Positions 405 to 53,140 are shown, counted from the first letter of the stretch. The stretch: DNA of 64,000 bases from Oopsacas minuta (GCA_024704765.1 JAKMXF010000342.1:124001-188000), one strand, 5' to 3'. Made by a program: numbers and translations. The notes: generated by a model not told the origin, from the letters alone.

Positions 405-2723
405 CACAGCCCTGCGGGAAAAAAAATTTTATTTGCTGATTGTTATTGCAAGACATTTTCTAATCCACATTTTAATTCTGATTTTGAAAAATGTTGTAAA
501 ATATACGTATCACGTCTAGTTTTTTAGCAAAATTATTTTTAAATATTGGTATATTTATCGATGAATGCATGATACCTCTACAAGTAAAATAGTGAAAATC
601 TGCCATTTATAAATTTTTACTAAGGATTACAATAAATTTTTATTGATAATATAATCTTAGTTAATAAATAAATTTGAATACATTAGTCTGAATCAGGAGT
701 AAATTTCCGTTTTTTTGACATTCAAGCATGAATAACATCAATACAATCTCTCTTGAGGCACCAGCAGTAATCAGCCATCATATGAACGCCCCACCTCCCT
801 TGATATCGTGTTTCCATTGTTTTTATGTCTTGGTGGAATCGTTCACCTTGCTCCTCGGAAACAGCTCCAAGATTCTCTGGAAAATAGTCAATATGACTGT
901 GAAGAAAGTGAACTTTTACACTCATATTGCAGCCGAGATTCTTGTAAGATTCAATCAACTCATTCACAAGTATTTATAATTAGGAGATTTCGTATTTCCC
1001 CAAGAAGTTTTTCATGACATTTACAAATGCATTCCATGCACATTTTTCTTTGCATATCATAGAATTTGAAAAATTATCATCTCGAACAAGTTGTCTTATC
1101 TGAGGACCGTCGAATATACCGGCTTTTCTTTTTTCATCACTTAGGTAGTAAAACTTCTCGGTAATATGTTTGAAACAATTTCCTTCTTTATCTAATGCCC
1201 TTACAAACTGTTTCATCAATCCTAATTTTATATGAAGTGGTGGAAGCAAAATCTTGAGAGGATCCACTAGAGGCTCGTGAATAATGTTCTTATCTCCAAC
1301 ATTTAGATTGGTTCTAGCTGGCCAGCTCTGTCTAGAATAGTGTTCGCTCTTTGCACGACTGTCCCATAAGCATAAAAAACAAGGGTATTTTGTATATCCT
1401 GATTGCTGTCACAAAAGAATGCATATGATTATTGAGTCACCACAGATTACCCAATTGTGCTGGTTATAATTAATTTTATGAAGCACAATTTTCATGTTAT
1501 CATATCGTTCCTTTAAACTTACTGAATGTCCAATTGGTATGGAACTAAATTTGTTGCCATTATGAAGTAGAACACATTTCAAACTTTGTTTTGAACTATC
1601 AATAAAGAGTCTCCAATCATTAGGTACATACGGACATCCAAGAGTATTAGCTAGCGGTGAAACATCATGACAAAACACAAATCCGTCTTCCATTATGAAA
1701 TATTTCAAAAATTCGATCTCTCTGTTCCTATATGAGTAAAATTTTGTTTCTGGGAGAAGCAAGTTTTTTTCTTTTAGCCTAGAACCTAACAACTCCGCAG
1801 ATTCTTTAGGTAAATCTAAATCACGTACCAAATCATTTAATTCAGACTGATTAAATAACTGTGGAGAATTAGAACGAGATAATACACACGGAATAAAATC
1901 CTCATCTTCTCTAATTAATGAATCTCTAGTTTCACAATCATCATTTTCCGAGATAACATCCAAATTAGTAAATTTTGGAACAGGTACATCAATAGAATGG
2001 GGAACGGGTCATATTGCTGAATGTAAATTTGGATACTTGATCAATGACTTGGTTTTAGCATTGAATCCGGAAATATTCGCCATACAAAAGTAGCAATCGC
2101 TAATGTGATTTTGTGGCTCTCTCCATATCATTGGAATTCCAAAACTTAAACTCTTTCTGATTCCTTTTGTCCATTGTCTCAAATTTTCTACACAAGATCG
2201 GCACACTGTATGTGGAGCCCATGTTTTGTCTTGATCACCTAATCTCATTCCAAAATATCCTAAATATGCTTTTTTAACAAATCCTGTTATTGCCGTAGTT
2301 TGTTTAGAAGTCATAAAACTACCACAAATATAGCAAAAGACGTCTGGATCATTACTGCACCTTCTCCGATAAGCCATATGATAATAAAATATCAAAATAG
2401 TAGACTATAGTACAATAAAGCTGTATATAACAAAAATAAAAATAAAACAAATTATGTAGAAAAGAATGGAGTTAAAGGGACTAATTAGAAAATACAATAA
2501 AGCACGCATCTGTTTATTTCAAAAGACAAAATTCACACAAGTATCAAATATAATAATTTATTCTAGGGAAGTGTACTTAAAAAAATCGACTTACATTAAA
2601 ATGACATTTGAGTAAAAACGAGACGTGATAGGGGAATTCTGATGACAGATTGAGAATCAGTATACTCAAGTTAACTAAAAACAACCCATGGATAATAATC
2701 AGCAAATGTGACGCAGGGCAGTG
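405..2723 (-). mobile_element. Chapaev3-like (CMC superfamily) DNA transposon, decayed full-length copy
   Basis: TIRs CACAGCCCTGCG (405) and CACTGCCCTGCG (reverse complement, ending 2723). Perfect TAA TSD at 402-404 and 2724-2726. Encloses broken transposase fragments. Confidence 0.85.
722..2395 (-). pseudogene. Chapaev3-like DDE transposase pseudogene in four frameshifted pieces
   Basis: ORFs 2009-2395 (CSNDPDVFCYICG, GDQDKTWAPH, CYFC zinc finger), 1409-1963 (ELNDLVRDL, WRLFIDSS, ICGD), 980-1267 (PPLHIKLGLMKQFV) and 722-967 (HFLHSH, EEQGERFHQD). These are collinear with the intact ORF at 39792-41513. Confidence 0.9.
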
Positions 2724-3325
2724 TAATTGATTAGCGTGAAAATACAGTAGTCAGTTTATGAACTGTGAAACAATCTTGGTTAGTTATATATTCCAGTGTC
2801 ATCTCGATAATATTCCACTATATATTGGTTACATAGCCTAATTATCGTGTCATTATATATTATCAAACATAGTTACACGTCTAACAAATTTGCATTTGAA
2901 AGAATTTATGCAATTTGAACTAATGAGTAGTATTTTCATCTTAATTGAAAGGGCTTAAAGCTTCACATATGATAGGGTGATATTACACAATTCGTAAACT
3001 CTCGAATCTGATAATACAGATAGGTAAATGCATTTGACACCTATCTCAGTAGAGTTTCTGAGATATTGCTTAGATCTTAGAACTTGTTCCTAGATTTATA
3101 ACATTCCATACACATGCCAAGTTTCAAGTCTCTAGTTCTTACCAGTTCCTCAACCAATTCCGAACAAAAATTCCCATCGACAAAATAATATATTAAAATT
3201 ATTTCAATATTCTACAGTGTAATGAGATTTATGCTAAAATTTTTGCCTCCTCCCTCTCCAGTTTGGATAGATAAACAAACATATCAACGCAGAACTTTTT
3301 GCGATAATTACACAATGGGTCACGT

Positions 3326-3372
3326 ATCTTTAAAGGCATAGATATCTAACAAATATCTATGCCTTTAAAGAT
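3326..3372. repeat. Perfect 20-bp inverted repeat with a 7-nt loop; TTAA-flanked AGG...CCT core
   Basis: ATCTTTAAAGGCATAGATAT ctaacaa ATATCTATGCCTTTAAAGAT. Confidence 0.85.
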
Positions 3373-3698
3373 CTATTACTTTAATGTTAATCTAACAGAA
3401 TACGAGATAATTAAATGAAATTTTCAATCTAACCAAAACTTAGAACATTTGACATATGAAACAAACGTCAAAACTTTTCGATATAGATAATTTCACTCAC
3501 TATCTTAGATTTCCAGATATTACTACAAGAAGTTGTAATGTATCCTCCTGTAATACATACTCGGAAATTGCGTAAATCAAAATTCTCATCGGCGACATTT
3601 AGCGACATATTTATCAAAAATTTGATTTCTGAATGCCTTGCCCCAGGATGATCCTCAATTCTTTGTTCAAAACTCCTGCAAATCTATTGAAATCGAAG

Positions 3699-4186
3699 TT
3701 ATAGCCTTGGAATATAGTTTAACTTGAAACATTTGCTTATTGATGAATACCTCTGTGGAAATATTGTAATAATGATAGACAATATATTTAAAAGATATAC
3801 AGTAGCTATCTTAGAACTATGCGAACCCTCAAGTGCCCTCGTATATATTTGTGGACTAAATTCTCTACCGGTATTTATAATACATTCTAAGATGCCAATA
3901 TCCTTGGATCTTTTCAATTTCGTTTCCAGCTAACATATCTAAAGTCTGCTACTAGATCAGGTGGTACCAAACCTTCCAATGCTTTGAAGATTAGCTGATG
4001 CAGTGAACACAAAATAGAGCTTTTACTATACTTGTCCATGAGCCCAAAATGTGTTTTCGGTATCATCTTGAGGGTTAAATCCCATATCATTTTTGGAAAG
4101 ATAGACATCGGTGAATTTAAAAGATTCCTGTAGATCGATGGTAGCTTTCGTTTGTTATCACCCCTAAGGGCCGGCTGTCCTAACAT
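3699..4186 (-). mobile_element. Possible 3' remnant of a non-LTR (L2/CR1-like) retrotransposon ORF2
   Basis: LIFKALEGLVPPDL followed by NTGREFSPQIYTRAL resembles the post-RT C-terminal segment of LINE ORF2. No RT core motifs are visible. Confidence 0.35.
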
Positions 4187-4306
4187 GGAGCAAATTATTT
4201 CAATTCATCTAACTGATTTTTGTATAATTTTAACCTTTTTCATTGTGATATTCATAGTCAGTATTACATTCCAACAATTTGGTGTTTAACTTGATCATAT
4301 TCCGAT

Positions 4307-4653
4307 CACTTTTGAGAATGGAATGTATCACATTCCAGCATTGTCAAGGAGACTTTTATCATCCTAAAGTGACCACCATAATGAATGAAATTTCATGTTG
4401 ATTACGAATATCTTAGCATATCGACTCGACCTAAATATGAATGTTATTATAATTTTATCTTATATTTGGTATCTATTTGTGCCCAAAATTTAGAAATTTT
4501 TACACTACCATTTATAATTTATTTCGATTCAATTTTCTATGTAGATATTCGTGTTTAGCATGAAATTTTCTTTAATTGTAGGTTTCACATGAAATGTTTG
4601 GCAAATTTCTCCTTGAAAACTCAAAAATGTGATACATTCCATTCTCAAAAGTG
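4307..4653. mobile_element. MITE-like element with 28-bp inverted repeats
   Basis: CACTTTTGAGAATGGAATGTATCACATT at 4307-4334 and its exact reverse complement at 4626-4653; non-coding interior; TSD not identified. Confidence 0.55.
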
Positions 4654-4864
4654 GTCAGAATTTCTTCGAGTGACCCTCAAATTGCTGTAATTTATTGGTG
4701 ATTACATTATGAATATCACGATTAAAATGGTTAACTCTCGGCTTCTGAATTTTTAGGTGTAATTACCTGATGTCAATCTCAATCTACGATATTCTTTATA
4801 ATTCATTTTGAACTATATGGATTCAGTGTAACCATTATATTATTATACGTTCTATAAACTTTAG

Positions 4865-5328
4865 GCAGAAAATGGAAATTGTTATGATTGCCGAATCAAC
4901 CCTATGGGGCAAAGAATGATTAAATCCGCTGAACTTGTGCCTGCAAGACGAAATATTCTCGCAGAAAAGCATTGCGCAATTCAAACAATTCATGAGTTTA
5001 TTTCAAAGAAACGTGATCTATTTTTGGTTGAATATGGTCTCAGTGTTAAGCGTGATGATTTGCTACTATTGGAGACCACTGCCTCACGAAGAGAGGACGA
5101 ATTAATGCATGCTGCGAAGTTACTCGAGGAAGATGCCACCAACTTTGATGAATTTCTTCGTAATACGAATATCCTCACTCAAAAAACCATCTCTTCAGCT
5201 GATTATTATGTTAAGGAGAGGTTCGAAAAACTTGTATATTCTCAGAAGTTGAAAAGCGAGATTATTTTACATAAGACTGAAATTTCAAAGAACGCTGATA
5301 TGTTGATCCAGTTGCGAGTATATGAATT
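4865..5328 (+). CDS. CFAP100: CFAP100/CCDC37-like cilia- and flagella-associated coiled-coil protein, exon containing a DUF4200-like region
   Basis: Peptide FISKKRDLFLVEYGLSVKRDDL...AAKLLEEDATNFDEFLR...TEISKNADMLIQLRVYE matches my recollection of CFAP100 (KKRQMFLLQYALDVKR...LEKDAALFDEF...SEISRFEDTLKHYKVYK). Acceptor TTTAG|4865, donor 5328|GTAAGT (phase 2). An upstream exon was not found; ATG 4904 is an alternative start. Confidence 0.85.
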
Positions 5329-6194
5329 GTAAGTAGTTTCTATCTTAAATAACAATTTTATATGTATGTAAAGTGAATCTAATTTCCTGGGTAATGTATT
5401 ACTTTAATTCACTAAATATAACTGATAATTCTACACTGAATATCTCACAGCTACTTTCATCGTTTTTTGGACCCGTGGATTTAGCTTAAGTAAGAAATAA
5501 CTAAATTTCTTAGTGCTTTTGGTCGATACTTAACTGTATATACTCGTCACTAAGTCCTCTACTTTATAAAGATGCTGATATTTACACTTTTATTATCTAT
5601 TGCCTTTAATTACTCGAGAATTTCGTAATTCTCAAAATTTCCGAAACAATGAAATATTTAGGTTTTGTTCCAGTCATCATATATTTATAATTGTATTATG
5701 CGTTTTAATTTTGTGAAATCACGAATTAAGAACTCCGATTGAATTGAAATTTTGCCTTGAGTTATTTTCATGTATTTAATTCGTAGCAGAATATGTGGCT
5801 ATATATTAATTGTATAGTAACATATGTTGCGATGAAAATGTAGCAACCACTTTAGTGACGTAATCATGGGGTTTTGAGGATTTGTAATGTTGCTACGAAC
5901 ATACTTCATATATATTAACGTATATATTATTCCAATATTTTGCTGTGTATCACTCTAAATATTCTGGATGGTTCATTGTTTATTTAAACAAGAATTACTG
6001 CTATGGCATTAAATTGCAGTATGGGAAGCAATATAGTCACGAAACTCTTTTCAAATTTGACAATTATTTCAACATGGTCTTGTTTGCAGGTCATGTATTT
6101 CTAAAATCCTCTTCGCCGAAATCTTATTAATTTATCTTTAGTAGATTATATCAAGTATACGATGTAGTAAGTTCTTGGTAAATCAATATTTATA

Positions 6195-6667
6195 CAGTGG
6201 AACCTGCATAATCCGACACCACTCTAATTCGGAATTTCGCTAAACCGACATTATTTCTTTTCACGGATACATTTTGTATAGAAAACAACTCCAATAACCC
6301 GGAACCTCGCTACTCCGTATTCCGACAATTTAATGATGATCAAGTAATATAAATTCGTTCTCAATAAACCGACAATTTAGCGATTTAGCTTTCATTTATC
6401 TGAGATGTACATATTTCAACAAATGTCGGATTATGGAGATGATTTTACTTTCATAATCCAATGTTATCGTTTACAATGTAAATATAGTATGCTGCATACT
6501 TGATATTTGACAACCATATGTCCTGAATTTTATTTGAGTATATATGAAAACACCTGTATAATCCGAAATTTTCTTCGTTCTCAACAAACGTCGGATTACA
6601 GAGTTTACTCGATAATCCGACATTTTCTTCGTTTCCCAACGAGTGTCGGATTATGCAGGTTCCACTG
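6195..6667. mobile_element. pogo/Tigger-type MITE
   Basis: TIRs CAGTGGAACCTGCATAATCCGACAC at both ends, TA on both flanks, internal repeats of the TAATCCGACA motif, no transposase. Confidence 0.85.
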
Positions 6668-6908
6668 TAACACGATTTCGCTCTCGCCCATTTTTTAATT
6701 TATTTATTCAATGACATAGGCGAGAGCATTTGATTATTCCTATTTCATCAAATGTAAACAACTATGTATTGGTGTAAGATTCTGGAGATTCTAGGAACAT
6801 CTCTCTCTGAGTTTTACTTCATGATTTCAACTTAATTTCATTACGTACTTAGCGAAAATGCGTCTTGAGCCGTATACTTCTTATCCAAATTCTACTCTAT
6901 ATATCGAT

Positions 6909-6929
6909 TATATATATATATATATATAT
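6909..6929. repeat. (TA)n microsatellite
   Basis: About 10 TA units. Confidence 0.9.
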
Positions 6930-7231
6930 GTTAATCGTGTTTTAATAGTATACATTGGTAGATTAGCTTCTTACTAAAGTTCAAGTTAGTGATATAATGC
7001 CATTATATTCACTAAGACAATGACACTCAATTCTAATTCTTTACCCTGGATGGCAGTTACCCTGGCTTTCAAATTTCAAATAGTTGTTATATCGCTTTTC
7101 AGTGACGTTCGAAAGCATTCTAAAATTATATATGGTATGCATTAGTAATTTATGAATTTTTGGACTATGTTTGTTGCTTTGCTTGACCGCTAGTTGGTCT
7201 CCTTTGCACCACAGCCTTATTCTGCCACCAA

Positions 7232-17600: not shown

Positions 17601-19441
17601 AAATGTGTTCTATATCTCCAAAATAGCTTCTTTCAACTCATTTGAGCTAGTAAATCTCTTTTTGAGGAGTCTCTTCTTTAGTACAGCCCAAAGATTTTCA
17701 ATTGGCTTCAGATCGGGGCTATTGGAGGGTCAGTCGATCTGATGTAGGACAAATTCCTGTTTCCAAGCCTTTGCTACATTTCCTATATGTATAGGACTGT
17801 TATCTTCCTGTAATACCCATTGATTTCCGTATAAAGCATTAGCTTCTTGTATAAGACACTCATTTAGAACTGTTTTGTATCGTTCTTGGTTGAAGTTTTC
17901 GGTGAAAACTTTGAGGTTTGTTTTGCCCATTACCGAAATACCACCCCAAATATGTAGCTTCGCTGGATGTTTAAAGTTAGCAGGTTAATGGACTGTCCTT
18001 TCTTTGTCCATACATATATCTTTCCTGAATTCATCCATATAGAGCATTCATCAGTAAAGAACACTTTAGACCAGTTCTGACCCCTCATTCGTTTACACCA
18101 TTCTATTCGTTTAGTAATATGGAGTTGTGACAAGGCTGGAATTCTTACTGCCTGGAGATATTGTAAGCCTCTCCTCTTCATTTCCTCCGATAGTGTGCTT
18201 TTGGCAACTGGAGTACTCAATTTTGCTCGACATTCATTCAGAGTGATCCTTGGATTGTGTTGAACGCGTGCCATAATCCTATTACTATCAGACTTGTACA
18301 ATATTTGAGGTCAACCTGCTCCTTTCTTATGAGTCAAGCTTTTGTCAGAAATAGACTTCAAAACACGATATACTCTCGCTCTGGTATAGCTAGTCGTCTT
18401 GATATTTCAGTCGCTTTTGTTATCCCAGCATCAAAGAGTTCCTTTATTCTGATTCTATTCTTTTCCTGAGCCTTCATACCAAAATTGTGGAAAATACTGT
18501 TAGTGAAAGTCAGAGAATATGGGTCTAAAATGTGTGAACAAAAATAATAAGCTCATATTTAATGTCAAAGATCATTTGGGATAGATAAGGCAGAAAATTA
18601 GAATGTCAGTGGATCTATACATTATATTTCGAGATATTATATGTTGCTATAACTTAGACGTCGTAAATAAGGTTGTTTCAGAATATTTGTAAGGGATAAT
18701 GAAAATAGTATTTACTGCCAATAATTTCCGAACGCACTGTATCTATGAGAAAATAGAGGTGTTTGATTGAAAACATAGTACACGCATATGCACACATTTA
18801 TATGTTTAATTTCGTGCAGTAATTTCCAAGAATAATTAGGATTATATGGGTATTCAATAATATAATTACAGATATCACTTTAGGAATTTCCTTAGCAACG
18901 ATTACCGACAATGGAATGTGACCAAAAAAATCAAAGTTGCGCACTGTTTCGGTACCTGTTATCTTCATATAACATACTATACTTATAACCAACAACTGGT
19001 ATTATTGTCGCTTTGAAGTTCTTTGACTTTTTCTTTTCAGACACTTTCAAAATTTATCCAGTGAAAAATGGGATCCATTTTTTGCCCTGAGTACAACAAT
19101 CCTTCACATGAAAAGTACACAGTTTGGAATATATCTGATACAAAATTTGAAATCAGCAGGCAAAATTGTCTAAAATTGATGAAACAATAGATCGCTAATC
19201 TATTTTATAAGGAAACAGAATCAATGTGTGAAAATCTTGTATGTTTTGAATTCTCCGAAACCTTAATTTCAGGATCAAAAACTAAGAAGTTTCGATTCAA
19301 ATATACATAACTAATAGGCTCCCAAATTATTTGAAAATTGGAATGGAAGCTACTTGAATGTTTAGAAACACAATGAAACCATAAAGGAATGAAAGCATTA
19401 CTATGAACAATTTCTTAATTCTTTACTACTAAGCCACTATG
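14690..19441 (-). mobile_element. Transib/RAG1-like DNA transposon 1, decayed, with a nested Tc1
   Basis: Ends CACAGTGGCTT (14690) and AAGCCACTATG (19441); 5-bp TSD CAGCG/TAGCG. Minus-strand motifs ISDGLDGSG, MLDGK...SCQLC, TPTLHKLL and SEEGSEACNK across about 15300-17335. Confidence 0.8.
17520..18739 (-). mobile_element. Tc1 DD34E element nested in Transib 1
   Basis: FTDECSI, then QEDN followed by 34 residues to PIENLW (count spans one stop). Right TIR ends CGCACTG|TA at 18739. The left TIR was not found, so the left boundary is approximate. Confidence 0.75.
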
Positions 19442-29517: not shown

Positions 29518-31799
29518 CACAGGTCAACAAAATTTAACTTCATTTTCTCATCAAGTATTAGATTGACATTTTCTAAGCTAGTATTCTACGCTGAATTCAA
29601 ATCTGCTTTCAGATTCTTTCCAGCATGTCCAGTTTTTTTCTATCTACAAGTCAACGATTTTTATGTATTTCCTAAATTTTTCCTGTTATTTTATGGTAGT
29701 GGCTATGTTTTTGCCTTCTTACATGATAGCTATCTGAAATAAATCAACGTTTCGATGTTTTTAGATTAATGCCAAGACAATATCAGTTGTTATCCTAGCT
29801 CTTACATATAATTATTCACATTCATGCATGTATCAACTACTCACAAACTAAAGGGAAATACATATCCATCTAGAAGTATAAAGGTAGCTAACTAAACTAA
29901 AAGTGTTGAGAGTACGACTTCCTTCTATATATCTTGTTGGGATTATCTCTGAAGAGCCTCCAACAGTAATCGGACATCATGCCCTCATTCCAGAAACCTT
30001 GGTATCGGGTTTCCATCTCCTGTATGTCTTGGTGGAATCTCTCACCCTGTTCATCACTTACAGTACCAAGGTTCTCAGGGAAAAAATCAAGGTGAGAGTG
30101 CAAGAAGTGAAGTTTTAGCGACATGCGACAGCCCATCTTCTCGTATGCGTTAAGCAAGGTTTCCACTCCTTCTCTGTAGTTGGACGACTTCTTGTTGCCC
30201 AAAAAGTTTTCACAAACCCATTTGAAAGATTTCCAAGCACTCATTTCTAATTCGGATAATTTCTTCTCGAAATCTGGAACTCTGAATACTTGTCTGATTT
30301 GTGGTCCTACAAATACTCCCTCTTTGAACTTTGCCTCGCTTAGTTTCGGAAATTTGCCTACCAAATGCAGAAATCCTGCTGAATTTGTTTTGCCCATTGT
30401 TTTCATTAATCCAAGTTTAATATGAAGTGGGGGTAAGAAAACTTTGTTTGGATCTACCGATGGCGAATGCTGTAAATTGGTTTTCCCCACTTCATAGGTC
30501 TCTTCGGCCAATCACATTTTTTATAATGTTCACCAGTTGCTCGGCTGTCCCATAGACATAGGAAACAACAATACTTTGTAAAACCTTGTTGCAAGCCCAT
30601 CAATAGCCCGATTATCTTAAGATCACCGCAAATATTCCATATATGTGTTCTATACTGTATTGCCTCCAAAGCTTCCTGCAAATTGGCGAAGGTTTCTTTG
30701 AGATAGACGGAGTGAGCAATTGGAACGTCAGGCTTAAGATTTCCGTTATGCAACAGGACAGCTTTCAAACTGCGTTTTGACGAGTCGATGAAAAGGCGCC
30801 ATTCAGAGGAAGAATGTTGTTGTAATAGGTTTGCATAGAGTCCTTCGATATCATTACAATAGCACAGTGGACCATCAGTGGTGTAGTGTTGAGCGAGATC
30901 GAAATTTCGCTTGCAATAGTGGGATACTAGGACATCTTTGTCGAGTAGGTTTTTCTGTTTGAGCCTGGATGCAAGGAGTTCAGCTTTGTCTTTAGATAAG
31001 TCTAGATCCCTGACCAGGTCATTCAATTCTCCCTGTGTTAATGTTTGTGGCTCTAGTAATTCATCTTCCGGGACATAATTAGCATCTGTAGAATCTGCAT
31101 GAACATCCTCCACCATATCTGACCCGATTTTAATTTGCTGTGGCTTGGGAATTGGGATTGGTAATGAGATGTCGTGTGGAATTGGCCTGCGAGCAGAATC
31201 CAAGTCTGGGTAAACAAGAGCGTGCTTATTCTTGGCTGAGAATCCTCTAATGTCGATAAGGCAACAGTAACAATCATCAAGGTGATTTATCTGTTCCCTC
31301 CAGACCATGGGTATTGTAAATGACATTGAAACTTTCCTTTTGTTCAACCAATCACGTAGTCCACTTGAACAAGAAGTGCATATAACATGTGGTGCCCACG
31401 ATTTGTCTTGGTCACCAAGTGGACATTCGAAGTACAATTTGTATATGTTCTTTAATTGATTTGTGATTGGTCGTCTTTGTGATTTTACACAAAAAAGACC
31501 ACAAACGTAACAGAAATTGTCGGGATGAGTTCTACAATTACGATGCATGTTTATAATTTGATTTGCTTGAATTCAAATAAGTAAAGTCATTTATATTCCG
31601 GATAATTGAATCAAAATAGGCATGCTCATATAGCAATTTAGTAACTAGGTAATACTATACTATTGAAAAAATGGATATTGGATTTCAGAATAACTATAGA
31701 CGTGCTAGAGAAATTCTGATTGCAGATTCGAGTTCAGCATTCAAAAGTATGCTAAGATAAATTTATGTGATCTCTGATGAGAAATCATGTTGAGTTGTG
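29518..31799 (-). mobile_element. Chapaev3-like transposon, copy A (2282 bp, frameshifted transposase)
   Basis: Ends CACAGGTCAACA and TGTTGAGTTGTG. ORFs 30454-31548 and 29897-30511 translate identically to 51110-52204 and 52147-52761. Confidence 0.9.
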
Positions 31800-36850: not shown

Positions 36851-39228
36851 GATAGCATCAATATATTTGCTATTATCATGAGTTACAGAATTGGAATCAA
36901 CAATAGTACACTTCTTGATTATCTCTGGGCCAGGGAAATAATTATAGTTTCTAGTCTTATATTACATAATTCAGGTTTCAGGCTAAAATTTGATGACCTC
37001 TAACTTAGATGCAGCAAAATTGATGAATTCTTTGTACTCCATCAAAAACATCTGCTTGAATGTCCCTAAGATTAAGTTGTGTATATAGATTTTTGCAGAA
37101 TTGATGAAAAGAAAATTATGTAGATTTCTGAAAGTTAGTCCAAAAGACGCGAATATCTCACAATGAGCAAACCATGTCGCATCAACAGCTATTGATCTAG
37201 ATCTCTAGTGGTTCTAGTGAACACAAGAATAGGCAAAGTTCGTTAGCAAAATGTATCCATCGATTTTAACCTATATAATTGGTCAAACAAGGTTTGTCAA
37301 ATCATATCATTCTATGTACTAAGGTAAAGGTAGTCACTAAAATAATTGGACCATGGATGCACCAATTTATTCAATTTAAAATTATTCTATATCACTGTAT
37401 ACCTGTAATTACGAATTTATTGGTCATCCCGTCCACCAAATGTCATCAGCATGTGTTAAATCTATAAACAGCATCGTCTTTTATGCAAATAGAATAAAAT
37501 TATCAAATTATGTGCAGTTTATACAAGTCATAATACAATAAACATATATTACATCAACATCAACATTCTAAAGGATTTGGTTTTAGTCTTTCTAGCAAAC
37601 AATATATTTTGTACTCTCCTACCACAATATAGAAACATAATAAGGAGAACGTCCTGGCAGGAAGGGCCTCTAGTACCTTTGAAATACACCTGGAAGTCGA
37701 AAGATTTGGGCCTCTTAGAATCTTTGTTGATAATTGCGGCTTCGTGAACCTCAACCTGCTATTTCTCGGTTTCATAAACTCAGGTCTAGCAGCCATTCTT
37801 CGTCCACTTGCAATTGGATTTCTCAAGCTAGTTCCATTTACGAACCCATTCGTTATTATCAACACTCTCTAAAGGGACTCTGCCAGAACGGAAACTATAA
37901 CCTCAACTCATTGTCCTTCAATAACAAGAAAAGATCAAAAAATAACAGTAGAGCTCGGATAGGAAATTCAAACGAAAATTGGTATGTGATAACTGAAGTA
38001 TGTCTTATCCGAATATTCAGCCTATACAATGGATAGGACAATATAAAATACATTTAGAGAATGGTATGTACTAACAGAAGTCAGCAAAAGCAGAGTAAGT
38101 ACTAATCAAGTTGTACTGTATCTACTATAGTGGCTTTTTCTATTTCGTGCAATGGAAAGTAACTCTTTAAGGACCAAAATACCCTGAAAAATAGCCTGAC
38201 ACTAATATATCGAGCAGGAGAGCACGCTGACTATTCTTGTAAACACAGAACTTTCATCGACGAATCATGGCATGTTGAACATGTATTATGGATTGAAAGA
38301 AAGGGTAGAATTACAATAATGCACCTAATGTATTGATGACACATTTCAACTATCTGTTGGTGTTTGTGATAGAACTCGCTGAGAGAGGATCCTCAGGACA
38401 AAGTACACAAGATCGGACAAAAACAGACGAAGTTACAAAAATTTCCTAAATAAGCCGAGTACTATGGAGGAATTATATTAGTAACTATGTTGAAATAATG
38501 CTGAGGAATTCTAAACAAACTACTATAGGTAGTATAGGCGGAATTAGGATCAATTGGGTGGTCACTGGCACACCTTGAAATCAGTGCACCCAGCAAGATT
38601 CAGTTCCATAATAACACCAAAAATATAGAGAGGATGGGCAAGACGTGATCTCGTCCACCCCGAATCGGACCCCTAGTTGTGCCATTGCCATATGAATGAC
38701 ATATTTAATCTTGTGGAATTTTCACGCTTTTGTCAGTTACCTCTTTCATGACTATAATTGATTGCGAAACATTTAAACAACCTATAATGTATGATGTGGC
38801 GTTGAAACTGGATATTTAGATCAACGATAATGCATGATTTAGATCAACGCTTGATGATAATTTTGTTCAAGGGGGATTATTTCCCTTTACTCCTTAATAA
38901 TTAAACGCGCGAACGAGTGTAGAGAGTATTGGAGGGAAGCAGAAATGAACACGAATGACGCGCGAATCGCGCTATATCAAGTCTTCGGAGAATTGTAAAA
39001 GGAACAATAGATATTTTCTAGCAATTCCTAGAAAACAAGTCCAAATTTCGACTCAATTTTCTATCAAAATCAGCACCAAAGCAGGACGAGTGTTATCTTA
39101 GCAGCCGATTCAGCAGCAGATTCAAATCCCCACTAAAACACCTTTTCTCAAAAAGTATGGGTTCTATTTTGAAAAGGACCATCCAGTGTCAAGAAGAAAG
39201 TTGGTACATTTCATATCACCACTCATAA

Positions 39229-41950
39229 CACTGCTCAACAATTTTTTTTCATTTTTTGTTGCATGAGATTTTTCAATTGATTCTGTATAATTTTGGGATG
39301 CTGATTTCAAATCTGCAATCAGTTTCTTTCTGCATGCTCTAGTTTTCATGCAATCGACAATTTAAATTTTTTCGTTTGTGGTACTTATTTAGTACATAAA
39401 TCTGATCTCCACCAAATACTTTTTATCTATCAAGCCATTTTTCTTAGATTGTAGCTGTTACTATGATTTAGTAATGGCTTCAATCTATTGAAAACAAAAG
39501 CACCACTCTATTGTTCTCTGAAAACATGACACTATTAGCGAAGTGTCAAAATTTAAATAAATCAAAAATCATCATGTGGATTTTTTTGAAATGATTTAAT
39601 TCAAACAACCCTAAGTGATTGTAGTGAAGTATCGTGGATAGATGCAGCAGAATAGGCATTTAAGCTGTATTTTTCCGCTCGTCTGCTGGTAGCCTTAATT
39701 AGAACCAAGGTTTTGTTATTCAGTTTGTTTGTGTTAAGTTACATAGATATCAACAGACTTTCTTTCGATTCTTAACTCTTCAGATTTGATCATGGCTTCT
39801 TCTAGTAGACATAAATGCAAAAATAACCCTGATTCATTTTGTTACATCTGTGGTGTGTATACGCTTTCGCGTCAAAGACGAAATATAACATCGTTTGTGA
39901 AGCGTGCCTACATAGCATACTTTGGTATCCCTCTTGGTGATCAAGATAAGAAATGGTCTCCTCATATTGTGTGCCATAACTGCGAAGAAATGCTCCGAGA
40001 CTGGACAAAAGGAAAGCGGAAGGGTCTGCCTTTTGCCATTCCAATTGTGTGGCCTGAACCCCAAGACCACACGACTGACTGCTACTTTTGCATGGTCAAT
40101 ACAAAAGGTGTTGGCAAGAAGAGCCGACAAACGCTTTCTTATCCTAGTATACCATCAGCTATGCGACCTGTCCCGCACTCTGATAGACTTCCTCCTCCGG
40201 TTTTTAGTGGTTTTGCTTTTCCTAATGATGAAGAAACTAAATTGGAAAGGGAAGAGATCGTAGAGATGGAATATCAAAAAACAGACACAGAATCAGAATC
40301 TGAAGATTCTTCTTGTGAAACCAGAGTAACTGTCCAGCAGTTTAATCAATCAGAACTGAATGACTTAGTACGTGATTTAGATCTGCCCAAGCAAGCAGCT
40401 GAGCTCTTAGCCTCCAGGCTCAAAGAAAAACAGGCGCTGGATCAATCTGTAAAGGTTTCCTTTTTTCGAAAAAGAGAAGAATTCCTTCTGCCTTATTTTT
40501 CAGTAGAAAATAAGCTGGTATATTGCAACGATATTCCTGGTCTTCTCGGACAACTGGGTATCTCCTCATATGATCCAGGAGAATGGCGATTGTTTTTGGA
40601 CAGTTCCAAGCGCAGCCTCAAGTGTGTTCTTTTACACAATGGAAATGTTTATGGAGCTGTTCCAGTTGGTCACTCCACTGTCTTGAAGGAACAGCATGAT
40701 GACATTAGAATTGTTATGGATTTACTCGGATATCATGATCACAACTGGATCATTTGTGTTGACCTCAAAATGGTTAGTTTTCTGCTAGGTCAGCAAAAAG
40801 GATACACTAAATTTCCATGTTATCTGTGCATGTGGGACAGCAGAGCACGTGAAAAACATTGGATACAGAAGGAGTGGCCCTTACGTGGAACATTTCAAGC
40901 TGGCATGCCTAACGTAACACACGACCCGATCGTAAACAGAGACAAAATTGTTTTTCCACCCCTGCACATCAAGCTAGGTCTGATGAAACAGTTCGTTAAA
41001 GCCCTAAATCCTGACAATGAATCCTTTCATCATCTTGTGTATACTTTCCCTGCTTTGTCATATGATAAAATCAAAGCAGGAGTGTTTGATGGACCACAGA
41101 TACGTACACTTATTCGCGACAAAAACTTCATTCAGAAAATGAATGTCAGGGAGAAAGCTGCATGGCTATCTTTTGTGGATGTTATACAGAACTTTCTTGG
41201 TAACAGAAAAGCTCCAAACTATGAAATGCTTGTATCCAAGATACTCTCAGGGTTTCGTGATTTGGGATGCAACATGAGCATAAAAGTACATTTTCTGTAC
41301 AGCCACCTGGACAAATTCCCTGAAAACCTTGGGGCTGTCAGTGACGAACAGGGAGAGCGTTTCCACCAGGATCTTATGACAGTGGAAGAACGTTACCAAG
41401 GTCGATGGGATCGACATATGATGGCAGACTATTGTTGGGGCATTAAACGTGACTGTCCTCACAAAGCGTACAAACGCAGAAGTTATAAGAGGAAATTTTG
41501 TCCAGATTTGTAGAATATTTGAATCTTTTGCATCTTGTCATTGATCGCTTTAAGTTACTATTGAAGATTGCCATCGTTCTTTTCTACGTTATTTTGCAAA
41601 AAAAAATAAATTTTTACATGCATATTACCAGCAAAACTGTTGTTTTTTACATTTTTTAAAACATTTGTTGCCCATCTGTCTACAAATACAATTTCTATTG
41701 GCAACATAAAAGTTTTTTGGCACCTATTTTTGTTTTGAGGCTAGTTATCCAACTGTAAGCAGAACATCATTTGACAAATCATGTCACTTTTTCAAAAAAT
41801 ATGAATTTTGTGCAAAAAAATTAAAAATCTCGATTTGCAAAAAATCTAGAGCTTGCGGAAAAAAACTAAGGTCGGATTCGGATTCAGCGCCCCAATATTA
41901 GGTAAAAACAAGTGTTGGTAGAAATGCAACAAAATTTTTGTTGAGGAGTG
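39229..41950 (+). mobile_element. Chapaev3-like transposon with an intact ORF, inserted in the left TIR of the Mutator element
   Basis: TIRs CACTGCTCAACAA and CACTCCTCAACAA; perfect TAA TSD at 39226-39228 and 41951-41953. The uninterrupted site is visible in the right TIR near 47693-47700. Confidence 0.9.
39792..41513 (+). CDS. Chapaev3-like DDE transposase, 573 aa from the ATG, uninterrupted
   Basis: N-terminal Cys/His zinc finger (CYICG, CHNC, HTTDCYFC). Candidate catalytic residues in LFLDSS, ICVDLK and DEQGERFHQD. Also PPLHIKLG and HFLYSH. Confidence 0.9.
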   Translation: MASSSRHKCKNNPDSFCYICGVYTLSRQRRNITSFVKRAYIAYFGIPLGDQDKKWSPHIVCHNCEEMLRDWTKGKRKGLPFAIPIVWPEPQDHTTDCYFCMVNTKGVGKKSRQTLSYPSIPSAMRPVPHSDRLPPPVFSGFAFPNDEETKLEREEIVEMEYQKTDTESESEDSSCETRVTVQQFNQSELNDLVRDLDLPKQAAELLASRLKEKQALDQSVKVSFFRKREEFLLPYFSVENKLVYCNDIPGLLGQLGISSYDPGEWRLFLDSSKRSLKCVLLHNGNVYGAVPVGHSTVLKEQHDDIRIVMDLLGYHDHNWIICVDLKMVSFLLGQQKGYTKFPCYLCMWDSRAREKHWIQKEWPLRGTFQAGMPNVTHDPIVNRDKIVFPPLHIKLGLMKQFVKALNPDNESFHHLVYTFPALSYDKIKAGVFDGPQIRTLIRDKNFIQKMNVREKAAWLSFVDVIQNFLGNRKAPNYEMLVSKILSGFRDLGCNMSIKVHFLYSHLDKFPENLGAVSDEQGERFHQDLMTVEERYQGRWDRHMMADYCWGIKRDCPHKAYKRRSYKRKFCPDL

Positions 41951-45712: not shown

Positions 45713-46477
45713 TTGAAGTCGAAAACATATGAATTTCCTCAATTTAATAGAGATAAAACTGTCGTAGAAGATAAATTAATCCCTATTAAGCGTCAGAAGT
45801 TGTCTACGTTACGCATGATTTGCAAATCACCAGAAATTAAGACTGCGTCAATTATTACCGATGAAGAATTGGTAGAGTCTAGTATAATACGATATACTAT
45901 AGCAAGCCTTCGTCCACCACACGTTGAATGTAAAATTGCTACCTGTAAGAAATGGAAACTACATTATAGTAATCAGATTGTCTATTCTTTAGATAATTTA
46001 ATTGATAATGGTGAAGGATTATATGTATATAATCCCGGAACAACAGAAATAATATCAAGTGATGGAAACTGTTATTTTTCTACAATTTCTTATCTAATAA
46101 CAGGTAGTAAAACCTATCATAAAGAATTACGGGCAATTATCGTTGAAAACATGCTTGGTAAATTAAGTGCGAGTTGTAATGCGTTTTTGCGTACTAAGTA
46201 TGTTTATACTCAAGGGAATTTTAGGAATATTCAGGATTGGGTAAATAAAATGGGGATGAATAAGGTTGGAAAATGGGCTACTGACTTAGAGGTATTTGCA
46301 ACTTCGTTGTTATTTAATATAGATATTTGGGTGTTTTTGGGCCCTACTGGAACTCGTTGGGCTGGGTTTTCAGGTAATGAATCAAGTTTTGATCTATTAT
46401 TAAAGGAGCCAACTTCAAATGGTTTATATATTCAAAATTTAGGTAATCATTACCGGCACATACTATCTCTAATTTAA
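45713..46477 (+). CDS. OTU-like cysteine protease domain, probably the C-terminus of the MULE polypeptide
   Basis: SSDGNCYFSTISYLITG (Asp/Cys), KWATDLEVFATSLLFNIDIWVF and YIQNLGNHY (His). The ORF track start is TTG, so it is probably not an independent gene. Confidence 0.7.
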   Translation: MKSKTYEFPQFNRDKTVVEDKLIPIKRQKLSTLRMICKSPEIKTASIITDEELVESSIIRYTIASLRPPHVECKIATCKKWKLHYSNQIVYSLDNLIDNGEGLYVYNPGTTEIISSDGNCYFSTISYLITGSKTYHKELRAIIVENMLGKLSASCNAFLRTKYVYTQGNFRNIQDWVNKMGMNKVGKWATDLEVFATSLLFNIDIWVFLGPTGTRWAGFSGNESSFDLLLKEPTSNGLYIQNLGNHYRHILSLI

Positions 46478-48042
46478 TATTAATAGCAATCCAATCATTG
46501 GTTTCAATTTATGGCAGCCAAAATTATATATTTACTAACAAGATTATTAGTGAAACAATAAATATTTTGCATAAATGGAATTTGGATATTTTGTGAGATC
46601 TCATCTAAATATGTAAATTGATTGCGACAAAAATCACAAATGTAACTATCTACTTATATATATCGACAGTTGGATTATATGGAACAATTATATGACTTTT
46701 TCTCTAATCAAGATACGTTTAAAAGCTGGATTATATTACCCAGGATTTGGAAACTAACGCAACACCAATATGCAAAGTTCTGGAAGATATATTCATAGTA
46801 GAGTAAACAATGAACATGAAATCTATATTCTTATCCTTACAATTATCTTAATCAATCTAGGAATTAAATCTACAAATCTCTCTTACAAACTTTTACTTTA
46901 CAATTTGTGCAAATTTGAATCAGAAAGAAGTTACTATCTATTTTTGGAGCATTCATTTGGAGACCCATGTCCTGGAGTTAACTCTCGATTCTCTTACCAT
47001 TCTGGCATTAATAATTACAAATCGAAGTGTTGATCGTCTCTTCAAATCTTATCTGGTCAAGACATTTGTTACTCTCCCTTATACGTATAGCTGTAAAGAT
47101 TTTGCATAAATAGTACCACCTGTTTTAGGTTTAGCCTGTTCTAATAGACAAGGGAAATTCAATCAGTATTTCTCATTAGTTCACCAATCAGTTCAATACA
47201 GAAAAGATAGACAGACAAACTATAATATCTGGTTAATTAGTATCTTGTAATACTTTTCGATTTGTTTACTCTTTTCTATTCAAAAAGTAAAGTTTTGTAT
47301 AAGGTATGATAACTGTCACTACAATGGTGTTGTGTTATTTATTATATTTCAAATATCTTCTGATTATTGACTAGAAAGCACAATAGAATTGGGACTATAG
47401 AATTGAAAATGATACTAAATCTTATCAAAATTTACGTACACTGTAATGTCATACATACTTCATTATTGACAGTACAAACTGGTCGTCTATGTAATTCCTA
47501 TGTAAAGTTCGGGCGTTCATAACTTTTTCAAAAATAATTATTTTAATCTCAAATTGGATATGCACAATGAACCAAGTGAGATGTAAATATGATTAAAGTG
47601 ATGAGTTGTCATCACAATTATTTCAGGAGATATTAATGAAAAACCTCGACCAAAATGTAATGCGAAATTGCTTACTTATCATATAAAATTTGGCGATTAT
47701 GAGTGATGATATGAAATGTACCAACTTTCTTCTTGACACTGGTATGGTCCTTTTCAAAATAGAACCCATACTTTTGAGCAAAAAGTGTTTTAGTGGGGAT
47801 TTGAATCTGCTGCTGAATCGGCTGCTAAGATAACACTCGTCAAAGCAGGATACATTTCAGAATACAAACTACGCCAACAAATTTAACCTGACAAATGCGT
47901 TAATTTCCCCAAGATTGAATATGGGCATTGCTAAGTAGCTTGTATAGAATCAATTAGCATGATCTCATTTAGCTGCTTCATAATTAAGAGTAATCCGAGG
48001 CATTAGGTTATCGCTTAGACCTAGCAAGAAAGCCAGCTAGTA

Positions 48043-49637
48043 CAGTGGATGCCAGTAATTCTACAAACATATCGGTAATATGAACCAATTACCAATACTT
48101 TAAGAGTGTTCTTATAACCGGGATTAATTAAATTGGGGTATATGGCAATCGTTTTCCGGTAAAATGTTCTTATACCCGTGATGTTAAAATAATCGGCATA
48201 GAATGTTCTTATGTCATGTAAAATCCCATGGAGTAGACTACAAAAAGATTCAGAGAATCAAGTTAAGGCTCATATAACAGGCATGTTAAAATAACCGATG
48301 TTATTACAGGGTACACATAAATACTGTTACAAATAATAAAAGGGCTGAAAACAAAAACTATTGGAGCGATCGCTCTATTATTCTAAATTATGTTTAGATA
48401 TACTATAGGGTTGAAAATTAAGACAGTATTACTCAAATATATCGCCTTTTGCCTTAATGCAGCTCTTCAGACGGACGATGAAGGAGTCTACACTGGCACA
48501 CACATGCTCATCCGGGATCTTTGACCGCTCTCTTAATAATGTTCTCTTAAGAACCTCAACTGAACGATGGGGTTTAGCATTAACCCTCTCCTCCAATATG
48601 GACCATATAGAGAAGTCGAGGGGGTTAAGGTCTGGTGGACTAGGTGACCACTCTTCGGAAGAAATGACCCCCGGAAAATTGGTCTTGCATCACTTTTGAG
48701 TGGCTTTAACCTTGTGAGCTGGGGCAGAATCTTGCTGTAATACCCATAGGTCGTTTCCAAAATGTGATTGTGCCCAAGGCTTCAAAACATTCTTAAGAAT
48801 TGATTCCCAATATAAACCGATTGGTTGATTTTCACACCTTGGGGGATAATTATCGAAGGTGTCCGACCAGTTGCAGTAACCCCGGCCCATACCATCACTG
48901 AAGCTGGTTTCTGCGTTCTAGAGACCCGGAAAGTAGATTCAGGCAAAGTACTCTTATCGGTGGCTAAAATCCTATGATTTTGCTTGTTTAGGACTTGCTG
49001 AACAGTAAATAATTTCTCATCAGAGAAAAGGATCTGCTTGTGTCGACCATTGGTGAAACGTGAAAGCATGGCCTTGCATCTTTCCAACCCGATACTTTAT
49101 TTTTGGCTGTGAGGAGTTGTCTTTTTTTCATTTTGTACGCTTTCATGCCTACATCATTACAATCAAGCCTCCGCATCAATTCCCTGTTCGTATTTATTTC
49201 AATGACCATTTTTCGGATACTTCGGGCGGGATTTCGTTTAATCAGTTGTAGCACCCTCTTGATCAAAGAAATTGACCATGCAGTACGTGGACGGCCAGAT
49301 CGTGGTCGGTCTAACACTTCCCCTGTATCAGCAAACCGTGACAAAGTTCGCGAAATAAACATCCTCTTGTAACTGAGCAAAGAGGCAATTTTACTTCTAC
49401 ATTTTCTGGCCTTGAATAACTCAATAACAGCTGAACGACGAGTCTCGATTACAAAATGTTGAAATTATAAAACTTCTAAGTGAGATATAGCTGGTGTGAT
49501 TTATTGAGATAAAATAGATATGTAGTACAATTTATTGGATAAGTTTCAACGCTATTGAATTATATTCATCTATAATATGGTAGTTTTAAAAGTTGTAACA
49601 GTATTTATGTGTCACCATGTATATCCGGCATCTATTG
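48043..49637. mobile_element. pogo-type MITE split by a maT insertion
   Basis: Ends CAGTGGATGCC and GGCATCTATTG with TA flanks; repeated GTTCTTATA and GTTAAAATAA motifs. Confidence 0.6.
48307..49619 (-). mobile_element. Tc1/mariner element, DD37D (maT/mori) type, decayed
   Basis: TIRs CAGGGT-ACACATAAATACTGTTAC and CATGGTGACACATAAATACTGTTAC with TA flanks. FSDEK, then QQD followed by 37 residues to PLDFSIW. Confidence 0.85.
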
Positions 49638-49736
49638 TATAATTATAAATTAGAAGTAAATCCATAGGGATATTTGAATCTTTTCCTTTTAAATAGTCCA
49701 GTAAAATCATCTGTTATATTACATTGACATACGCCA

Positions 49737-50468
49737 ATGCACGCCATATATCCAATAACTACTAGTATAATCATAGAGTGGCTCTCAAATATTTACAACG
49801 GAGAAATAGCAGAATGGACTTTGATGGCGGAATCATATCAACTAATGAACCAATTCAGTCTCCACGAGACAATTTTGATATCACCAAATACATTCCTATT
49901 CTGGATCATCTTGTTTTTGCATTAGATCAAAGTATATATGCCTTCCAGATTCTGAATGAAAGATTCGATGTTTGGTTAAAAATTGGCTCAGATGACAATA
50001 GTGCTGAGGAAGTTAGTGAAGCTACTCAGAAACTTGTCTCTGTGTATTCTCAAAATCTTGAACCATCACTAGGTGATGAGTTAGTACAACTGTCAGAATT
50101 TGTTTCACTATGTCAAGATGAAAAGGCACAAGACGAATCTCATTAGTTGTTTATGTATCGTATGATAAAGGTAAAGGACTATCATCAACATTTCCAAATG
50201 CACAGATCTGTTGAGAAGCTTTCTGTCATCAATGGTGTCCAATTCAAGTGGAGAACGAACTTTCTCTAAGCTGAAGCTTATCAAAAATGAGCTTCGCTCA
50301 ACAATGTTCCAGCAAATCCTCACATTTTTGTCTGATATGAACATTGAGTCTGACATATTGCGGAAGCTGAATCCTGATGATGTTATTTATGATTTTCCAG
50401 AAATAAAGCTAGGAAGGTATTGATTTGAACGTCAATTACTAGTAGTTGCAAGTAAACTACTGTAACAA

Positions 50469-50534
<66 letters not shown>

Positions 50535-50704
50535 TAATATAGTGCACATAAATAAGTACAAATACAACTATAACTGCTAGAAGGCATAGAGACAACAAAA
50601 CTTTCTCTATATTATACATACGGGATATATCCACCTATCGGGAAGTCTACGGGGCCGCCAAATTGAGTTGTGCCTGAGTCCTAATCTAGCTTAATCGGGC
50701 CCTG
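49737..50704 (+). mobile_element. 3' half of a hAT transposon (ZMYM1-like C-terminal dimerisation domain)
   Basis: MVSNSSGERTFSKLKLIKNELRSTM...NIESDIL. The terminus TTAATCGGGCCCTG at 50704 resembles hAT ends. Confidence 0.7.
50471..50538. repeat. (TAA)n microsatellite
   Basis: About 22 TAA units with one interruption. Confidence 0.95.
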
Positions 50705-50858
50705 TCTATAAAAAGCATAAGATGGTATTGATATGATTCAATTAACTTAGTGGACAATCAGTAGACTAAGGAAAACAATTATCGACATAATAGACACAAT
50801 TTGCGTGACGTCATAAACCAAATAAAACTTGAAACCCGAGTAAGTCAATAACTGAAAA

Positions 50859-53140
50859 CACAACTCAACATGATTTCTCATCAGAGATCACATAAATTTA
50901 TCTTAGCATACTTTTGAATGCTGAACTCGAATCTGCAATCAGAATTTCTCTAGCACGTCTATAGTTATTCTGAAATCCAATATCCATTTTTTCAATAGTA
51001 TAGTATTACCTAGTTACTAAATTGCTATATGAGCATGCCTATTTTGATTCAATTATCCGGAATATAAATGACTTTACTTATTTGAATTCAAGCAAATCAA
51101 ATTATAAACATGCATCGTAATTGTAGAACTCATCCCGACAATTTCTGTTACGTTTGTGGTCTTTTTTGTGTAAAATCACAAAGACGACCAATCACAAATC
51201 AATTAAAGAACATATACAAATTGTACTTCGAATGTCCACTTGGTGACCAAGACAAATCGTGGGCACCACATGTTATATGCACTTCTTGTTCAAGTGGACT
51301 ACGTGATTGGTTGAACAAAAGGAAAGTTTCAATGTCATTTACAATACCCATGGTCTGGAGGGAACAGATAAATCACCTTGATGATTGTTACTGTTGCCTT
51401 ATCGACATTAGAGGATTCTCAGCCAAGAATAAGCACGCTCTTGTTTACCCAGACTTGGATTCTGCTCGCAGGCCAATTCCACACGACATCTCATTACCAA
51501 TCCCAATTCCCAAGCCACAGCAAATTAAAATCGGGTCAGATATGGTGGAGGATGTTCATGCAGATTCTACAGATGCTAATTATGTCCCGGAAGATGAATT
51601 ACTAGAGCCACAAACATTAACACAGGGAGAATTGAATGACCTGGTCAGGGATCTAGACTTATCTAAAGACAAAGCTGAACTCCTTGCATCCAGGCTCAAA
51701 CAGAAAAACCTACTCGACAAAGATGTCCTAGTATCCCACTATTGCAAGCGAAATTTCGATCTCGCTCAACACTACACCACTGATGGTCCACTGTGCTATT
51801 GTAATGATATCGAAGGACTCTATGCAAACCTATTACAACAACATTCTTCCTCTGAATGGCGCCTTTTCATCGACTCGTCAAAACGCAGTTTGAAAGCTGT
51901 CCTGTTGCATAACGGAAATCTTAAGCCTGACGTTCCAATTGCTCACTCCGTCTATCTCAAAGAAACCTTCGCCAATTTGCAGGAAGCTTTGGAGGCAATA
52001 CAGTATAGAACACATATATGGAATATTTGCGGTGATCTTAAGATAATCGGGCTATTGATGGGCTTGCAACAAGGTTTTACAAAGTATTGTTGTTTCCTAT
52101 GTCTATGGGACAGCCGAGCAACTGGTGAACATTATAAAAAATGTGATTGGCCGAAGAGACCTATGAAGTGGGGAAAACCAATTTACAGCATTCGCCATCG
52201 GTAGATCCAAACAAAGTTTTCTTACCCCCACTTCATATTAAACTTGGATTAATGAAAACAATGGGCAAAACAAATTCAGCAGGATTTCTGCATTTGGTAG
52301 GCAAATTTCCGAAACTAAGCGAGGCAAAGTTCAAAGAGGGAGTATTTGTAGGACCACAAATCAGACAAGTATTCAGAGTTCCAGATTTCGAGAAGAAATT
52401 ATCCGAATTAGAAATGAGTGCTTGGAAATCTTTCAAATGGGTTTGTGAAAACTTTTTGGGCAACAAGAAGTCGTCCAACTACAGAGAAGGAGTGGAAACC
52501 TTGCTTAACGCATACGAGAAGATGGGCTGTCGCATGTCGCTAAAACTTCACTTCTTGCACTCTCACCTTGATTTTTTCCCTGAGAACCTTGGTACTGTAA
52601 GTGATGAACAGGGTGAGAGATTCCACCAAGACATACAGGAGATGGAAACCCGATACCAAGGTTTCTGGAATGAGGGCATGATGTCCGATTACTGTTGGAG
52701 GCTCTTCAGAGATAATCCCAACAAGATATATAGAAGGAAGTCGTACTCTCAACACTTTTAGTTTAGTTAGCTACCTTTATACTTCTAGATGGATATGTAT
52801 TTCCCTTTAGTTTGTGAGTAGTTGATACATGCATGAATGTGAATAATTATATGTAAGAGCTAGGATAACAACTGATATTGTCTTGGCATTAATCTAAAAA
52901 CATCGAAACGTTGATTTATTTCAGATAGCTATCATGTAAGAAGGCAAAAACATAGCCACTACCATAAAATAACAGGAAAAATTTAGGAAATACATAAAAA
53001 TCGTTGACTTGTAGATAGAAAAAAACTGGACATGCTGGAAAGAATCTGAAAGCAGATTTGAATTCAGCGTAGAATACTAGCTTAGAAAATGTCAATCTAA
53101 TACTTGATGAGAAAATGAAGTTAAATTTTGTTGACCTGTG
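50859..53140 (+). mobile_element. Chapaev3-like transposon, copy B (2282 bp), inverted duplicate of copy A
   Basis: Same length, identical ORF translations, and no differences seen in the roughly 400-bp 3' end compared by eye. Confidence 0.9.

Follow-up and report, generated by a model that had tools for sequence, protein, structure and literature searches.

Chapaev3 transposons mostly combine a short and a long end whose spacers differ by one helical turn

The ends of Chapaev3 DNA transposons are bipartite and come in two discrete spacer lengths one helical turn apart, and elements overwhelmingly carry one end of each length, across a deep radiation of the group. We describe this arrangement from a 64,000-nt stretch of the Oopsacas minuta genome (GCA_024704765.1, JAKMXF010000342.1:124001-188000; hereafter the window), in which four Chapaev3-like copies, termed D, B, I and A, were located by tblastn with the transposase, and from the whole of this sponge genome and a set of metagenome contigs. 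The original prediction, made from the window, held that an internal motif begins about one helical turn further from the terminal CAC at one end of an element than at the other, and likened this asymmetry to the 12/23 rule of RAG recombination. We found the asymmetry to be sharply bimodal and to recur in many lineages, both in this genome and among the metagenome contigs.

Each Chapaev3 end consists of a 13-bp inverted repeat (consensus CACTGGTCAACAA), which forms the terminus where cleavage occurs, and a conserved subterminal array of ~90 bp. Positions 1–3 of the 13-mer, CAC, were 100% conserved, and the termini read CAC...GTG in all four window copies and in all 41 analysed elements. When the two ends of an element were aligned with each other, the 5′/3′ length difference appeared in nearly every element as a single gap of 8–12 nt, starting at position 12–20 of the long end. 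The gap falls directly after the terminal 13-mer, in a spacer of ~7 bp at the short end (S) and ~17 bp at the long end (L), and the remaining ~90 bp are collinear between both ends, giving one dominant k-mer diagonal at ±10. Spacers are 85% A+T, short and long alike, compared with 64% further in. Given these AT-rich spacers of ~7 and ~17 bp, the long end has its whole array set one helical turn deeper, counted from the cut site. Behind the spacer, the array begins with a family-specific block (often TTTGNT...), followed ~42 bp on by a 22-bp site of the form CTGA-N14-TCAG (GCTGAWTYCRAAT..(A)TCAG) and, ~20 bp further inward, by a ATCACGTC- or GCTCTAG-like block. The motif starts at position ~63 in short ends and ~73 in long ends, corresponding to roughly 6 and 7 helical turns. 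A hairpin reading of CTGA-N14-TCAG was set aside: only the outer 4 bp are conserved, positions 5–6 show no clear covariation, and TCAG is often degenerate. Across all analysed elements, position 13 of the 13-mer is A at nearly all long ends and often C, T or G at short ends.

All four window copies display this architecture, and the motif positions of the original prediction (62/73 for A and B, 72/63 for I and 63/73 for D, where the match at 477 is weak) proved correct on direct count. The intact family I element (39229–41950, plus strand) is flanked by a target-site duplication (TSD) of TAA/TAA. Its long end, 5′ of the open reading frame (ORF) at 39229–39322 (plus strand), comprises a 13-mer (39229–39241), a 16-bp T-rich spacer (39242–39257), an inner GTTGCAT block at position 30 and the 23-nt motif at 39300–39322 (position 72). 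In its short end, 3′ of the ORF at 41866–41950 (minus strand), the 13-mer (41938–41950) is followed by a 7-bp spacer, GTTGCAT stands at position 21, and the motif starts at 41888 (position 63). Genomic copies of this family are 97–100% identical, with TWA TSDs and open frames. Copies B (29518–31799, ORF on the minus strand) and A (50859–53140, ORF on the plus strand) both belong to family A and are frameshifted. In B, the long end starts at 29518 and has its motif at 29590 (position 73), and the short end, with its terminus at 31799, has it at 31738 (position 62); in A, the short end at 50859 has its motif at 50920 (position 62) and the long end at 53140 has it at 53068 (position 73).

Copy D (405–2723, ORF on the minus strand) is decayed, and its protein is 52% identical to the intact transposase by tblastn on the minus strand. 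It is flanked by TAA/TAA in an A..T context, and its ends match those of 20+ genomic D copies. The long end, 3′ of the ORF at 405–499 (plus strand), has a terminal 12–13-mer at 405–417, an AT-rich spacer of ~15–17 bp, a 9–10-nt gap at position 17 and, from 477 onwards (position 73), a weak copy of the motif. The short end, 5′ of the ORF at 2639–2723 (minus strand), has its 13-mer at 2711–2723, a spacer of ~5–7 bp and the motif from 2661 (position 63); the right terminus itself, for which only a motif position had been given, is 2723. Because a conserved block, ATCACGTCT, sits at position 97 in the short end and 107 in the long end, the 10-bp shift is confirmed in D despite the weak match at 477. 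A third inverted block in D, TATCACGTCTMGTTTT, occurs at 500–512 and 2618–2630, ~97 nt (short) and 107 nt (long) from the termini, and similar blocks are found in other families (ATCACGTC; GCTCTAG in family I and some metagenome lineages); it may be a further, putative binding site. Amino-acid identity among the three window families (D, A/B and I) is 42–52%.

The motif GCTGAWTYCRAATCTG occurs 10 times in the window with ≤2 mismatches, compared with 0.48 expected. The matches at 31193 and 51450 fall within the A/B ORF, and one at 36886 appears to be due to chance.

We then took a census of the ends in the 61-Mb genome (365 contigs), which holds hundreds of Chapaev3 copies, using the end pattern TWA-CACW-N-CTGAWYYYVAWT with several gap ranges and a reversed-pattern control for each. 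A gap of 45–85 bp yielded 484 matches (control, 12). These were concentrated at 56–59 bp, the short class (199 matches; control, 1), and at 66–70 bp, the long class (234; control, 2), and only 11 fell in the intermediate range of 60–65 bp (control, 2), about half of which come from known families, in decayed or slightly altered form. Matching TSDs of TAA or TTA flank dozens of genomic copies.

Scanning JGI/ENA metagenome contigs with a transposase alignment identified 80 loci, ~28 of which had credible CAC...GTG termini around the ORF. The k-mer diagonal between their 5′ and 3′ ends lay at +10 in six elements, at −8 to −11 in ~seventeen, and at 0 or +1 in two (L087, which has long perfect terminal inverted repeats (TIRs), and L126). 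It was odd in three, which still carry a 10–13-nt or split gap at position 13–17. CTGA started at position 64 in 18 short ends and at 73–74 in 21 long ends, so that ~25 complete elements on contigs unrelated to the sponge share its two motif positions. Of 30 lineages, 24 had an absolute offset of 8–12 bp (mode 10; 3e-14 under a uniform null that ignores relatedness), and 25 of 28 classifiable lineages were heterotypic, compared with 49% expected from end frequencies (1e-5, again ignoring relatedness). Conceivably, spacer length has no role at all, and one ancient 10-bp insertion beside one terminus has simply been inherited; the end architecture is homologous in all sampled lineages, for which a single origin is plausible. 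We consider this explanation very improbable, as the spacers have been replaced in sequence from lineage to lineage (AnTn tracts, T8CAT6, AATTTAACTT...) at constant lengths of ~7 and ~17 bp. Moreover, the asymmetry is kept, with the motif held at 63–64 or 73–74, across transposases that have diverged to ~38% identity; intermediates account for only 11 of 444 genomic ends despite slippage-prone poly-A/T tracts; and other non-coding parts vary freely, with elements ranging from 2.1 to 3.1 kb.

The orientation of the asymmetry relative to the gene differs between families. Direct inspection bore out the original prediction that the long end lies 3′ of the ORF in D and A/B but 5′ in I. We mapped this polarity onto a tree of 39 transposases (quick IQ-TREE maximum likelihood, midpoint root; for the tree only, stops in broken copies were read as X). 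Most lineages are 3′-long, and this state occurs on both sides of the midpoint root. The 5′-long state is essentially confined to one clade, which unites I and E with six lineages from metagenomes (11 rows, 2 changes, 1 forced), and symmetric elements are scattered tips. Since the 3′-long state spans the midpoint root and the 5′-long state is essentially one clade, the asymmetry is old. The polarity change involved both ends together: the arrangement was mirrored whole and not eroded. Because polarity is mirrored in this clade, the asymmetry can be assigned to the ends rather than to the gene, as had been proposed.

The mirrored clade also bears on whether the extra 10 bp have some other function particular to that end, for instance as a promoter element, a polyadenylation signal or the site of a host protein that bends DNA, with length as a by-product. 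Long spacers are 85% A+T and often AnTn tracts, and families D and J have AATAAA on the complementary strand of their long 3′ spacer, as this explanation would lead one to expect. It is nevertheless improbable in our judgement: the long end is 5′ of the gene throughout one clade, AATAAA is absent from many long spacers, short spacers are equally AT-rich, and the constant increment of 10 bp would go unexplained. A polyadenylation signal as the reason for a long 3′ spacer was rejected, failing for the 5′-long clade and for many 3′ spacers.

The transposase of the intact element is encoded at 39792–41513 (plus strand; 573 aa) and comprises an N-terminal zinc-finger region, a disordered acidic linker (~107–179) and a RAG1/Transib-fold core (226–558). 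In a 12-sequence alignment, C343/C346, L391-H392 and H500/H505 were invariant, forming the C(2)C, LH and H(4)H motifs; D270, D324 and E519/E522 were invariant acidic residues and, judged from this alignment, are a candidate DDE triad. We modelled the protein with AlphaFold (predicted local distance difference test score (pLDDT), 66; predicted template modelling score (pTM), 0.52) and compared the model with known structures. In a Foldseek search against the PDB, ranks 1–41 were all HzTransib, RAG1 or BbRAGL (E 8e-6 to 2e-3), followed by Hermes (E 0.03). Alignment with VIA-align gave a Z score of 17.9 for HzTransib (309 aa aligned; root-mean-square deviation, 4.1) and ~16 for RAG1 504–1003, compared with ~9 for Hermes and ISCth4. 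The predicted fold is therefore a specific match to HzTransib, RAG1 and BbRAGL, in line with the RAG1/Transib-type fold originally proposed. This result agrees with the placement of Chapaev3 by Kapitonov and Koonin, who grouped it with Transib and described a Chapa zinc finger common to Chapaev3 and the RAG1 N-terminus (PMC4411706). Interaction with nucleic acid has been described for the RAG1 region that corresponds to this zinc-finger domain (PMC3124419). We identified no counterpart of the nonamer-binding domain in the alignments, which begin at RAG1 ~479–504, after that domain, and in which the N-terminal zinc finger was not searched alone. Model residues 186–225 form short helices. Family F, whose ends are symmetric, is no different from the others in the linker joining the zinc finger to the helix-turn-helix-like region (59 aa, compared with 52–67 aa elsewhere).

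Pfam returned 0 matches for the transposase, and a protein search returned 1873 relatives at E ≤ 1e-10. Among these are unnamed 'uncharacterized proteins' with 57–67% identity from Hydra and, in vertebrates, from a bat, a poison frog and two squamates, an amphisbaenian and a snake, a spread that, as far as sequence similarity indicates, fits the published horizontal spread and host range of Chapaev3.

To establish which ends occur together, plus- and minus-strand rows were matched by hand on contigs C1–C244, for which both lists are complete. The paired elements comprised 46 S/L, 4 L/L and 0 S/S. Heterotypic families were I, D, A, E, G, J and K, with J including ~20 non-autonomous copies of 1.1–1.2 kb; K, along with N, P, R and M, was read from 80-letter rows only. 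The L/L arrangement was found in family F (at least nine full TSD-flanked pairs) and in related H miniature elements (at least three pairs), and all symmetric elements that carry the motif are L/L. The termini of H resemble those of the L/L autonomous F, and the S/L non-autonomous J copies belong with S/L autonomous J. Derivatives with two like ends are common in other DNA transposons. In the S/L families, none was present among the 46 pairs, which include deletion derivatives of J and I.

We favour a functional coupling between the enzyme and the geometry of the ends because of the lack of S/S elements, the lack of like-ended derivatives and the correspondence between H and F. The transposase probably contacts both the terminal repeat and the subterminal array, with its core joined by a long flexible linker to the N-terminal zinc-finger domain. 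A difference of one turn would preserve rotational register while making the two ends geometrically unlike, and a complex of one short and one long end would be favoured, by analogy with the 12/23 rule of RAG or the P element with its 9/21 spacing. Such a preference would not be absolute, L/L being tolerated in some lineages and S/S being unseen. On the basis of the sequence comparisons, we put at about an even chance that the bipartite ends, through their one-turn S/L offset, favour synapsis of unlike ends.

Alternatively, spacer length could matter for helical phasing only: array and cleavage site would have to face the same side of the helix, so that spacers could differ by whole turns alone, and the transposase would have no preference for unlike ends. 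S/L would then prevail because the common ancestor happened to be S/L and exact 10-bp indels are rare. The discreteness of the two classes, 10 bp apart with almost no intermediates, is in keeping with phasing, as are the viability and multiplication of L/L families and the way in which polarity and state track the transposase tree, as inheritance predicts. We nonetheless regard phasing by itself as unlikely, though far from negligible, given that S/S is missing from 50 paired copies and ~28 lineages, that like-ended derivatives are missing from the S/L families, and that both ends switched together at the polarity change.

Several points weigh against a preference for unlike ends. Family F has propagated as L/L, with its at least nine full copies, and H is likewise L/L; in the metagenome set, L126 is L/L and L087 has its long perfect TIRs. 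Because F, H and these two metagenome elements are symmetric, a strict pairing rule is excluded for at least those lineages, and because L/L cases exist, any pairing rule is a preference and not absolute. As the lineages are related, part of the conservation could stem from a single old indel that was inherited, and the tests above ignore phylogeny. In addition, the structure model is of middling quality, and the linker, at 75 residues, looks so flexible that the enzyme need not register an offset of 10 bp.

A broader and more tentative proposal, to which we give somewhat less than an even chance, is that the S/L one-turn pair is ancestral and selectively maintained in the whole Chapaev3 radiation, biasing synapsis towards unlike ends, and that 12/23-type geometry is general and old in RAG1-fold transposases. 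If true, such geometry would exist in sponges without RAG2 or a canonical nonamer-binding domain, and would not be an innovation of the RAGL/RAG line.

The recombination signal sequence (RSS) recognized by RAG is laid out as a heptamer, a spacer of 12 or 23 bp and a nonamer. Chapaev3 ends resemble it in having CAC at the cleaved terminus, a second element whose spacer is about one turn longer in one partner, and an enzyme core of the same fold. They differ in having a 13-mer instead of a heptamer, spacers of ~7 and ~17 bp instead of 12 and 23 bp, and a ~90-bp array instead of an A-rich nonamer; furthermore, there is no RAG2, and L/L families exist. Among Transib and RAGL elements, 12/23-like TIRs have been described in some Transib families, including Transib5 and Transib2_AG (PMC1131882), the RAGL-A TIRs of P. 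flava have a 10-bp asymmetry (PMC10462144), and ProtoRAG prefers asymmetric TIRs (PMC8289069). These elements share with Chapaev3 a RAG1-like transposase and unlike 5′ and 3′ spacer lengths, and their order of heptamer, TR2, spacer and inner element resembles the order of 13-mer, spacer and array. However, they have a 5-bp TSD and TIRs of ~38–60 bp, whereas Chapaev3 has a 3-bp TWA TSD and a much longer inner array, and most Transib families are symmetric, whereas asymmetry is the norm in Chapaev3 (24 of 30 lineages).

In the Drosophila P element, the spacing between terminal repeat and internal site is 9 bp at one end and 21 bp at the other, a difference explicitly likened to 12/23, and a flexibly tethered N-terminal zinc THAP domain has been proposed to accommodate it (PMC7776569). 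Its transposase is unrelated, with a GTP-binding insertion, its TIRs are 31 bp and its TSDs 8 bp, and it is a single family rather than a deep radiation. Within Chapaev3, the published families Merrow, Garfield and Conan have TWA TSDs between A and T, CAC...GTG termini and a single transposase of ~560–600 aa with C(2)C, LH and H(4)H (PMC4079192). Window elements D and I are likewise flanked, as A-TAA...TAA-T, and the termini and transposase motifs described above agree with the published ones. That paper and its supplement mention neither spacer asymmetry nor a subterminal motif, and show ~20 bp per terminus, too short for the spacer to be measured. We found no description of end asymmetry in Chapaev3 in the full-text literature (Repbase Reports and Dfam lay outside the search). 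End-length asymmetry is on record for a few Transib families, RAGL-A, ProtoRAG and the P element, and the sequences analysed here would add Chapaev3.

The origin of the asymmetric 12/23 signal pair in V(D)J recombination is debated, with the Transib seed hypothesis and the RAGL-A TIRs as candidates (PMC8355894, PMC10462144). One-turn asymmetry as the norm in a distant RAG1-fold branch provides a third, independent data point. The Chapaev3 branch comprises many apparently active single-protein elements, with family I showing intact ORFs and near-identical copies, and its natural S/L and L/L families make it a simple system suited to asking whether end geometry alone imposes the choice of partner.

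Some further observations concern individual copies and repeats. The motif also occurs, at position ~60–61, in R (CACATTCTTTGCTAAAG...), a low-copy repeat for which no partner end matched the pattern; the sites of R are G000:C5:99622, C155:665049, C296:435383, C307:373750 and C327:283381. In the window, a lone motif copy on the minus strand at 19142–19230 has 2 mismatches and is followed by a ...TATCAG arm; it lies 72–74 bp inside a CACACATTG... sequence, without a TWA flank or a partner end, and from its sequence may be what remains of an old element's long-type end. In one copy of family D (L028, on G000:C321), the 3′ terminus carries ~six tandem 18-bp units before a normal long end, each unit combining the outermost 10 nt of the terminus with AATTATTA. 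Finally, window copies A and B, 19 kb apart and in inverted relative orientation, are 100% identical across 2282 bp and share the frameshift. Neither has a matching TSD, the plus-strand flanks being TTA|B|TAA and AAA|A|TTA. Judging by these flanks, inversion of the intervening segment by recombination between A and B would restore TTA/TTA for A and TTA/TTT for B.

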